Shown here in pieces: positions 35,475-38,897 of a DNA stretch of 64,000 nucleotides; the first letter of the stretch is position 1, and each line of letters starts with the position of its first letter. Source of the stretch: Oikopleura dioica (Eukaryota > Animalia > Chordata); NCBI GenBank assembly GCA_907165135.1, contig OU015569.1, forward strand, positions 5,456,001 through 5,520,000, in the 5' to 3' direction. The translations under genes were made by a program, and so were the position numbers. Below the pieces are notes generated by a model that saw only the letters and a program-made list of their open reading frames with translations, had not been told where the DNA came from and made no database searches.

Positions 35475-36884
35475 TTATGACAACATAGGAAAGAAAAGGT
35501 ATATTTTCAACTCTTTGTCTGCGACGATTTCTAATTTTGAGTTTGGTGTGATAAGAAATTCCATTTTCTTCGAGATTGAGCGGCCATTTAAAGTTCCGCA
35601 TCCTTTCCAGACAAGAGCAGCTTTTTTGGGTGAGGATAAGCGTCGACTTACATGAAGTAATTCATTCATGAACTAAGAATTATGAAAGTCACCGATTCCT
35701 TTAGGGCTACAGTCGTTTTCGTAATATAGATTTTTACCCTTCTTTATAAGCCACTCTTCGCCGTCAAACATGTCGTGGAATATTTTGGACTGAAAGATTA
35801 ATAAAAGGAAAAGGGTCCAAAATCACCATTTCAAAACTTTCAGTGTGCTTGAAAACGCGTTTGTTTGTTTTCCAAATCGTTTCCGATTTCGGATCCACAT
35901 TCATCTCCCAATCAATACAGCGGTCGACAAACTCTTCAACGTTCCTAATTCTTTTTTAATAATTTCTCAACGCTTCTCTTACTGAAGCCCACGAAGCTGA
36001 TTGTCGTTTTTCATCGAGACTAATTGATCAGCATTGATTCTTTCGCCGAGTTTCCAGGCTTAATTGTTGATTAATGAGCATGGTTTTTGAAATTTACCCA
36101 AAAAGTTGAAATCGTCTTGGGGTCTCTGGATTTCTATAGTCAACACTGGTCCCGGAGCGTGCACGAATCCGGGCCTGACCATCCAGCATTCACCTTCTTT
36201 GACTTCGTATTCGTTCATAAGATTGTACAACGCGTCACTTTTCCCGAATTCGTTCATTGCTTCCAAAAGCATCTCCTTTGAAACTTCTTTCTTGAAGCCC
36301 ATTCGCGTTATTGGCGAAGAATCTTTGGGAATAAATGGAAAGAACTGTGCTTCTGCTTTTCCGCAGGAAATTTGATTGTTCCGGTCTTTTGTGCAGCCAG
36401 CGTGGATATGTGCAGGAATAGGAGGTATCTCATTTGTTCCGAAACTTGTCTAATGTGATCATTTATAGAAACATTCTTGAACAATTTAAGATACCTGTGT
36501 TAATTTTCCTCCGATATCAAGAACTTTTATCAAAGGCCAAGAATCTCTTAGACGCGTTAAGTTTTCAAGAATATTTCAATTCTACCTGAAAGTTCCAAGT
36601 AATCGCTCTTCGCAAGCATTCACTGCATCGAGAAAGGAGAAATCATATCCTTGAACTTTTGTGAGCCCTTCGCCAGTCAATTTGACAGGATTTTGAGCTT
36701 CAACTAATGACAGAATCCACCGCTCTACTGGCCAATACCCTCTTTGATCTGGCTCTTCATCGCTCGAATTTTTACCAAGAAAATTGTTTCCATTGTAACT
36801 TCCTCTGTAAACAATGGTTTCTCTTCCGAATAAAATACCCCCTGTTAATTCGAGTTCTCTCTCTATTACTTCAGACAACATCAT
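35475..36884 (-). CDS. Bacterial-type phosphomannose-isomerase-like cupin protein, with at least five GT-AG introns
   Basis: Spliced product contains WPLIKVLDIGG, PIPAHIHAG, GKAEAQFFP and ECWMVRPGFVHAPGPVLTIEIQRPQDD. These parallel bacterial ManA-type motifs (FPLLxKxLD, xHP, GKxEcWY, VPxGTxHA...E.Q..SD). The last intron boundary is not resolved. Confidence 0.75.
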
Positions 36885-37116
36885 TTGTCTTATTCGAAAT
36901 TATTTCTATGTCCTTCAATGGGCGTTGGCTATGCAAATAATCTTTTTTTCCATTTCTTAGATATTTTAAACTAAAGATAATAAATTCTACTGATATTACT
37001 TCTATGGTTAGAGCAGAAACATTCTGCCGTTAATTCTATGATCACTGGATTACAGTAATTTTTGAAGTCATCACTAAAAAAAATAATATAAATATTGTCT
37101 TTGTTGAAACACCATC

Positions 37117-37235
37117 GCTTAGCGTCATACCGCGTAGAATAAACCAGTTCTCGTCCGATCACTGAAGTCAAACTACGACGGGCGGGGTTAGTACTTACAT
37201 GGGTGACCGGTTGGGAATACCTCGTGCGCTAAGCA
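37117..37235 (+). rRNA. 5S rRNA: 5S rRNA gene, left copy
   Basis: GCTTAGCGTCATACC...TCTCGTCCGATCACTGAAGTCAA...GGTTAGTACTTACATGGGTGACCGGTTGGGAATACCTCGTGCGCTAAGCA, 119 nt with pairing ends, followed by a TTTT Pol III terminator. Confidence 0.95.
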
Positions 37236-37490: not shown

Positions 37491-37583
37491 ACTCATCCCA
37501 TTTTTGAGTCCGATTTCGATTGTCTAACAGGTAAGAATCGTCTCCATGCCCTCTCTCTCCTATGACGCGCTTTTTTTAAGGTG
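37491..37583 (+). ncRNA. SL RNA: Spliced-leader (SL) RNA gene, left copy; SL exon 37491-37530, donor GTAAG at 37531; 3' end approximate
   Basis: The 40-nt exon matches the O. dioica SL sequence as recalled from the literature and is followed by a perfect 5' splice donor; ~255 nt downstream of the 5S gene on the same strand. Confidence 0.92.
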
Positions 37584-38430: not shown

Positions 38431-38523
38431 CACCTTAAAAAAAGCGCGTCATAGGAGAGAGAGGGCATGGAGACGATTCTTACCTGTTAGACAATCGAAA
38501 TCGGACTCAAAAATGGGATGAGT
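38431..38523 (-). ncRNA. SL RNA: Spliced-leader (SL) RNA gene, right copy; SL exon 38523-38484; 3' end approximate
   Basis: Exact reverse complement of the left SL copy, including the GTAAG donor. Confidence 0.92.
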
Positions 38524-38778: not shown

Positions 38779-38897
38779 TGCTTAGCGCACGAGGTATTCC
38801 CAACCGGTCACCCATGTAAGTACTAACCCCGCCCGTCGTAGTTTGACTTCAGTGATCGGACGAGAACTGGTTTATTCTACGCGGTATGACGCTAAGC
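38779..38897 (-). rRNA. 5S rRNA: 5S rRNA gene, right copy
   Basis: Exact reverse complement of 37117-37235, with a T-run terminator. Confidence 0.95.

Follow-up and report, generated by a model that had tools for sequence, protein, structure and literature searches.

An unannotated protein family with the phosphomannose-isomerase fold in Oikopleura dioica, sponges, protists and rare prokaryotes

The locus and the gene model

We describe a gene on the minus strand (36884..35475) of a 64,000-nucleotide stretch of Oikopleura dioica DNA (contig OU015569.1 of assembly GCA_907165135.1, positions 5,456,001 to 5,520,000), referred to here as the window. It has seven exons and six introns (37-78 nt) and encodes a 377-amino-acid (aa) product that resembles phosphomannose isomerases (PMIs). 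An initial annotation of the window, made from the letters alone, had called it a bacterial-type PMI-like gene and a candidate for horizontal gene transfer (HGT). From the comparisons below, the predicted protein is a member of an undescribed, unannotated family of ~400 aa within the class I PMI fold. Our literature search found no report of this gene in Oikopleura.

The exon model was made by reading the reverse complement and picking splice sites that preserve the frame. Exon 1 (36586..36884) begins with the ATG at 36884-36882, encodes residues 1-99 and two nucleotides of codon 100, aligns with the N-termini of homologues and ends before a GT donor at 36585. Intron 1 (36547..36585; 39 nt, GT-AG, phase 2) is required for the frame. 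It is followed by exon 2 (36495..36546), which carries WPLIKVLDIGG, and by intron 2 (36450..36494; 45 nt, GT-AG, phase 0). Exon 3 (36098..36449) is the putative catalytic core and bears the putative metal ligands H131 (36410-36408), H133 (36404-36402), E150 (36353-36351) and H214 (36161-36159). After intron 3 (36059..36097; 39 nt, GT-AG, phase 1) comes exon 4 (35983..36058), which was set by the frame and the alignment of homologues, and then intron 4 (35945..35982; 38 nt, GT-AG, phase 2). Exon 5 (35827..35944) carries CIDWEMNVDP and is separated by intron 5 (35790..35826; 37 nt, GT-AG, phase 0) from exon 6 (35699..35789). Intron 6 (35621..35698; 78 nt, phase 1) has non-canonical GA-AG borders, and exon 7 (35475..35620), which aligns with the C-terminal cupin strands of homologues, ends in a TAA stop at 35477-35475 that overlaps an AATAAA at 35475-35470. 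All these features are on the minus strand. Introns 2-5 have the same positions in an orthologue on another contig (L003, of assembly GCA_977009715.1; L and P numbers are our own labels), in which introns 1 and 6 are absent and one additional intron is present.

The RNA support covers the last three exons and comes from a marine metatranscriptome contig. This contig confirms intron 5 exactly (joint 35789|35827) and also intron 6 (joint 35620|35699, with a 4-nt ambiguity), and it extends to 35452, ending 18 nt past the AATAAA. Our first model had a 72-nt GT-AG intron in place of intron 6, which was ruled out by the joining of 35699 to 35620 in the RNA contig. The orthologous stretch of L003 is unbroken at this point and has an identical K|A junction. 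Exon 6 rests both on the RNA contig and on the alignment of homologues. In total, residues 6-377 align end to end with homologues of ~400 aa (E 1e-80 to 1e-90); at E 1e-80 or better, such an alignment excludes chance. Oligo-dT RNA-seq reads from runs with the same species label match 35750-35790 only, that is 40 nt of exon 6, at 90-95%, and outside this interval they pass into different sequence. Since so short a stretch is matched at this level, these runs seem to derive from a strongly diverged lineage that expresses the orthologue.

Much of the initial annotation of the gene itself is borne out. All the motifs that it quoted are in the translation (WPLIKVLDIGG, HIH, GKAEAQFF, WMVRPGFVHAPGPVLTIEIQRPQDD, ERW, EGL and CIDWEMNVDP), and the at least five spliceosomal introns that it proposed are six in our model. 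The acceptor AG that it saw 4 nt before the ATG is present at 36889..36890 on the minus strand and is, from its sequence, a candidate site for trans-splicing of the spliced leader (SL). Its view that this is a host gene and not contamination agrees with the six introns, the spliced RNA contig, the host neighbours, the adjoining 5S/SL cassettes, the orthologues in at least two further Oikopleura-like lineages and the purifying selection, which are described below.

A family with the PMI fold

Database searches were made with exon 3 and with profiles of homologues, and the full spliced model was compared by local scripts. Single-exon searches of Pfam, NCBIfam and the PDB sequences gave almost no matches. 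There was no Pfam match on any exon or on the full-length homologues, and no NCBIfam match on the full-length members. With exon 3 the TIGR00218 manA model was hit below threshold (E 0.0023, 17 bits, where the curated cut-off is 116), and none of the curated class I PMI models (Pfam PMI_typeI_cat and MPI_cupin_dom, and TIGR00218) was reached at threshold. When 1.84 billion representative proteins were searched exhaustively by HMMER with exon 3, 123 reached E<=0.001, so the family is small. Its signature is WPLxKxLDIGG, PPIPxHxH, GKxEA(Y/Q)FFP, VHAPGP and E(I/V)QxPQDD, with VxRxxYxG, VE(W/R)W and WPLxKxLDIGG as conserved N-terminal blocks.

The relationship with PMIs is clearest in structure. 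The AlphaFold model of the homologue P0006 has a predicted local distance difference test (pLDDT) of 94 and a predicted TM-score (pTM) of 0.91, and in a Foldseek search of the PDB its top 17 matches are all class I PMIs at 10-16% identity, with E 6e-15 to 4e-11 for 1zx5, 1qwr, 3h1m and 1pmi. The family profile matches 1zx5 as well (E 3.4e-5). The nearest clusters in the ESM Atlas are unannotated ‘putative mannose-6-phosphate isomerase’ proteins (TM 0.82-0.84), followed by Pfam-annotated PMI clusters (TM 0.65-0.73), and a feature-based ESM Atlas search with exon 3 points in the same direction. The claim that this is a PMI-like cupin and not the canonical eukaryotic MPI is upheld.

Our reference system is the class I PMIs (Candida albicans 1pmi, Salmonella 3h1m, Bacillus subtilis 1qwr and Archaeoglobus AF0035 1zx5; PF20511/PF21621 and TIGR00218). 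The Zn ligands of these enzymes, known from the Candida and Salmonella structures, are Gln-x-His, Glu and His. Common to them and to the family are two cupin barrels with a helical insert and, for what would be the metal ligands of the family, the order (Q/H)-x-H, E, H. H131-x-H133, E150 and H214 of the Oikopleura protein follow this order in columns that are invariant or nearly so across the family, and these four residues would hold a divalent metal in the manner of the Gln, His, Glu and His of PMI. The family differs from class I PMIs at 10-16% identity, in having His for Gln as the first ligand and in its extra N-terminal blocks. The initial annotation had noted His-x-His where PMI has Gln-x-His; this is seen, and the His is a trait of the whole family and not of Oikopleura alone.

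A second, remoter family (L046-L096; e.g. L074 6001-7032 and L096 6001-6813) also came to light. Its members are 25-30% identical (hhalign probability 99.7), have no Pfam matches and keep PHxH, GKPEAYF and HAPG. They are widespread, being found in Planctomycetota, Chloroflexota, Armatimonadota, a cyanobacterium and others.

Orthologues and selection

The orthologue on L003 is 72% identical to the Oikopleura protein. A third lineage, on contig L012, is ~52% identical and has introns at other positions, and additional exon-sized fragments of 50-70% identity were found. Against the L003 orthologue, the proportion of non-synonymous differences (pN) is 0.14 and that of synonymous differences (pS) is 0.78, the latter being saturated. 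Of the residues that are invariant in the family 46/48 are kept, and of the near-invariant ones 21/23, with the four putative ligands included. The two altered invariant residues are 152, where Tyr has become Gln, and 156, where Pro has become Phe; the Gln is seen in 3/3 Oikopleura-like lineages, and at the second site the three have Phe, Cys or an unresolved residue.

The diverged orthologues, the low pN relative to pS and the kept invariant residues together indicate that the gene is old within the Oikopleura-like lineages and is under purifying selection. At least three of these lineages inherited it from their common ancestor.

Taxonomic distribution

Named members were collected from two profile searches, taking the best 120 matches of each (more than 120 further matches followed in each), and from cluster look-ups. 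Sponge members come from all four classes: Sycon ciliatum (LOC135818546), Halichondria panicea (LOC135330924), Oscarella pearsei, O. lobularis (XP_065842839.1) and Oopsacas minuta (LOD99_1039). Choanoflagellates are represented by Mylnosiga fluctuans and Salpingoeca helianthica, and the Amoebozoa by Phalansterium, Cavostelium, Pelomyxa and Balamuthia; one MMETSP protist transcriptome also holds a member. The named prokaryotic members are from Aenigmarchaeota, Verrucomicrobiota, Bacteroidota, Carboxydochorda and Parcubacteria. No named member from cnidarians, other bilaterians or other tunicates is among the best 120 matches of either profile search, and divergent animal members may exist beyond the matches viewed.

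The family is rare in prokaryotes. When 185,579 prokaryotic species were scanned, with one genome per species, 80 loci were kept, of which ~29 are close relatives. All of these ~29 are in metagenome-assembled genomes (MAGs), mainly of DPANN archaea and of bacteria of the candidate phyla radiation (CPR), with scattered loci in Dehalococcoidia, Limnochordales, Acidobacteriota, Planctomycetota and others. Given this rarity and the eukaryotic members, the label ‘bacterial-type’ is not apt.

The Sycon gene (L006) has 12 introns and the Halichondria gene (L007) has 7, and both lie between animal genes (TRAF, ephrin, kinesin). No intron position is common to the Oikopleura gene and the Sycon or Halichondria genes, the nearest being 1-2 codons apart. 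The two sponge genes share no intron position even with each other, so introns are uninformative on the origin of the Oikopleura gene. Copies without introns, two of which lie in tandem, occur in eukaryote-like DNA on other contigs of the sponge clade (L008, L010 and L011). The distribution of introns suggests that the ancestor was intron-free and that introns were gained independently.

The sponge and choanoflagellate proteins are of one family with the Oikopleura protein, with the same length and the same invariant residues; the Oikopleura clade differs from them in having lost the PPYN loop and in having Gln for the invariant Tyr. In identity to the Oikopleura protein, prokaryotic members (41-43%) and sponge members (~40%) are about equal. 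A 2-residue deletion and the states VERW and WPLIK are common to the Oikopleura proteins and some protist members, Phalansterium and P0011 among them.

Phylogeny

Trees from FastTree and a quick IQ-TREE run left the gene unplaced, and were dropped. In the quick run, both constrained searches gave better trees than the free search, which means that the quick trees are unreliable. We then rely on a careful tree of 92 sequences and 394 columns (LG+C20+F+G4, full search), from which a distant outgroup was removed and to which two Oikopleura-like relatives were added so as to divide the long branch.

Here the three Oikopleura-like sequences group together with 100/100 support. The sister of this clade is P0233 (87/63), followed by P0028 and by a protist group with Balamuthia (81/71); P0233 and P0028 are both on mRNA-sized contigs. 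Further out come the sponge-choanoflagellate clade (82/89) and then an amoebozoan clade. All the named prokaryotes lie outside the assemblage that holds the Oikopleura clade and all the named eukaryotes, and no supported nesting inside a prokaryotic clade was found in this tree. In approximately unbiased (AU) tests, neither grouping Oikopleura with the sponge-choanoflagellate clade (3.2 log-likelihood (lnL) units worse, p 0.46) nor moving it to the prokaryote side (14.9 lnL worse, p 0.153) was rejected. Only two alignment columns distinguish the sponge-choanoflagellate clade from the prokaryotic one, and neither is informative. Taken together, the phylogeny favours a eukaryotic affinity, with no placement rejected.

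Prokaryotic gene context

The prokaryotic members provide clues to function. The PMI-like domain is fused to an HldE-type adenylyltransferase in P0004 and P0010, to a complete HldE-like kinase/adenylyltransferase in P0015, to an ARMT1-type phosphatase in P0003 and P0142, and to both phosphatase and adenylyltransferase in P0009. Fusions with kinases are found in P0024 and P0066 (PfkB) and in P0014 (PRK/uridine-kinase-like). In addition, a cluster on a 257-kb metagenome contig holds a family gene, two GT9 heptosyltransferase-like genes, ARMT1, PfkB plus cytidylyltransferase, an NTP-transferase and an epimerase. These fusions and the GT9 cluster are in uncultured archaea and bacteria (L001 8001-9707 and its neighbours, P0003, P0009, P0015 and P0024).

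The isomerase of the textbook nucleoside diphosphate (NDP)-heptose pathway is GmhA, and the ketose-to-manno-aldose step is the same for PMI, with a C6 substrate, and for GmhA, with a C7 substrate. NDP-heptose synthesis comprises four activities, a kinase, a phosphatase, a nucleotidyltransferase and an isomerase (PMC11461863). By analogy, the context of the family looks like a pathway of the NDP-heptose type, in which a cupin isomerase and an ARMT1 phosphatase would replace GmhA and GmhB; it is heptose-like and not GDP-mannose-like, a further difference from class I PMIs. Because the fused and adjacent genes supply the other three activities, and because PMI and GmhA share their step, we infer that the Oikopleura protein is a metal-dependent sugar-phosphate isomerase. 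What can be said of function in the family is drawn by analogy from prokaryotic gene context only.

Function

We consider it reasonably probable that an appendicularian of the Oikopleura type has here a functional nuclear gene, which encodes a two-cupin, probably metal-dependent aldose-ketose sugar-phosphate isomerase and has its affinity with the eukaryotic members of a PMI-fold family. The enzyme would interconvert a ketose phosphate and a manno-configured aldose phosphate, and its product would feed a nucleotide-sugar route. Candidate substrate pairs are fructose-6-P/mannose-6-P and sedoheptulose-7-P/D-glycero-D-manno-heptose-7-P, the latter proposed from the prokaryotic gene fusions.

Several observations pull the other way. 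The modelled fold is that of P0006, a homologue ~41% identical to the Oikopleura protein, and it is from motif order and fold that we infer the equivalence of H-x-H, E and H with the PMI ligands. The Gln in place of the invariant Tyr of GKxEAYFF in all three lineages could mean an altered substrate. The name ‘mannose-6-phosphate isomerase’ that the Balamuthia member bears is an automatic annotation. As for the eukaryotic affinity, a long stem of 1.16 changes per site leads to the Oikopleura clade, bootstrap values at the nodes that place it are 73-87%, and the prokaryote-side placement is not rejected at p 0.15. Finally, vertical descent would need many independent losses, as among the named animals listed only sponges carry the family.

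The main functional alternative is that the protein is the animal's own mannose-6-phosphate isomerase, a non-orthologous replacement of the canonical MPI. Fold and motif order agree with class I PMI, and the automatic name of the Balamuthia member would fit. Still, the prokaryotic members travel with heptose-type kinase, adenylyltransferase and phosphatase genes and not with GDP-mannose genes, the first ligand is His instead of Gln, and identity to solved PMIs is 10-16%, so that we regard this replacement as rather unlikely. A more specific proposal, that the family is a cupin-fold replacement of GmhA that makes manno-heptose-7-phosphate, draws on the same analogy of gene context and is in our view very improbable as it stands. 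GmhA, the sedoheptulose-7-phosphate isomerase of the ADP-heptose pathway, perhaps does the same job as the family, judging from gene context, and has an SIS fold that is unrelated to the cupin fold. That the protein is a non-catalytic or decaying remnant, to which the two altered invariant residues (152 and 156) and the thin RNA coverage might point, is hardly credible given an open frame across seven exons, 46/48 invariant residues kept, pN of 0.14 against pS of 0.78 and the recurrence of both substitution sites in three diverged lineages.

Origin

In the reading that we favour, the gene of this probable isomerase sits among family members from sponges, choanoflagellates, amoebozoans and other protists. 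Vertical descent from the animal ancestor, with many losses, is a serious possibility, to which we give a little less than an even chance.

A tentative second explanation is that the stem of the Oikopleura-like lineages acquired the gene from a unicellular eukaryote such as prey or a symbiont. The nearest sequences in the careful tree are P0233, P0028 and then the group containing Balamuthia, with sponges only afterwards; the indel and the motif states are common to that protist group; and named cnidarians, bilaterians and other tunicates were not seen among the best 120 matches per search. Set against this, the support of the nodes is weak (87/63, 73/23 and 81/71), the tree loses only 3.2 lnL (p 0.46) when the Oikopleura clade is joined to the sponge-choanoflagellate clade, and long-branch effects are likely.

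That the appendicularian lineage received the gene directly from a bacterium or archaeon and later gained introns in it is close to what the initial annotation had in mind, and we think it distinctly improbable. Prokaryotic members are about as close in identity as sponge ones (41-43%), their side of the tree is reached at a cost of 14.9 lnL only (p 0.153), no intron position is common with the sponge genes, and beyond sponges no named animal is among the best 120 matches per search. However, the best tree sets the clade by P0233, P0028 and the Balamuthia group and not in a prokaryotic clade. The close prokaryotic members are moreover very rare (~29 of the 80 loci kept, from 185,579 species) and are all uncultured MAGs, and the 2-residue deletion, VERW and WPLIK are held in common with protist members (Phalansterium, P0011).

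As judged from these sequences, the gene is not a demonstrable bacterial acquisition, nor is it a recent bacterial import. The description as bacterial-type and an HGT candidate is thus unsupported as it was put, in view of the sponge, choanoflagellate, amoebozoan and other protist members, the rarity in prokaryotes and a tree that sets the gene among eukaryotes. Vertically inherited orthologues, broadly present across animals and other eukaryotes, had been named as the finding that would speak against transfer. We find orthologues in early animals and in other eukaryotes, though not broadly across animals.

Neighbouring genes

Beyond the stop of the PMI-like gene, 104 nt further along its strand, lies another ATG (35370), the first to follow. 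The gene that begins there (to ~33520, minus strand) matches CHGN / Glyco_transf_7C, which makes the earlier label ‘GalNAc-transferase-like’ a fair one. Next is a chitin-synthase-like gene, from 33156 downwards to ~30896 on the minus strand, which has a weak Pfam match only. Three glycan-related genes, PMI-like, GalNAc-transferase-like (CHGN / Glyco_transf_7C) and chitin-synthase-like, therefore follow one another on one strand. The operon-like spacing that had been pointed out is seen in the 104-nt gap, but on L003 and L012, the contigs of the relatives, the PMI-like and CHGN-like genes were not found side by side. Without conservation in relatives we do not read this adjacency as a functional operon.

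On the other side of the gene, 5S rRNA genes lie at 37117-37235 (plus strand) and 38779-38897 (minus strand) in inverted orientation. Exact matches to the 3′ part of the SL are found at 37512-37530 (plus strand) and 38484-38502 (minus strand), one after each 5S gene; the query was the 3′ part of the Oikopleura dioica SL sequence. The 5S and SL cassettes form a palindromic pair just upstream of the PMI-like gene, and 5S rRNA and SL RNA genes lie within 250-650 nt of it. The cassettes, the very short introns and the presence of a GA-AG intron are all in keeping with DNA from Oikopleura.

Significance

This gene is a cautionary case for the study of HGT, in that a ‘bacterial-looking’ gene of Oikopleura has relatives in early animals and protists. 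Until the phylogeny is better resolved, it should not be counted with cellulose synthase among the genes acquired from bacteria. Among the matches listed, the occurrence of the family in animals is strikingly patchy, being confined to sponges and appendicularians.

More generally, we have here a conserved, cross-domain enzyme family that has the PMI fold and is without a curated model. The prokaryotic fusions yield a testable hypothesis, that its members carry out the isomerase step of an NDP-heptose-like pathway. According to the account of Tang et al. (2024) that is given in PMC11461863, NDP-heptose synthesis was lost in deuterostomes. If the family did replace GmhA, that view, as reported there, would be contradicted: a chordate would still make, or would have regained, a sugar phosphate or nucleotide sugar of the heptose type, which might serve the glycans of its house or tunic.

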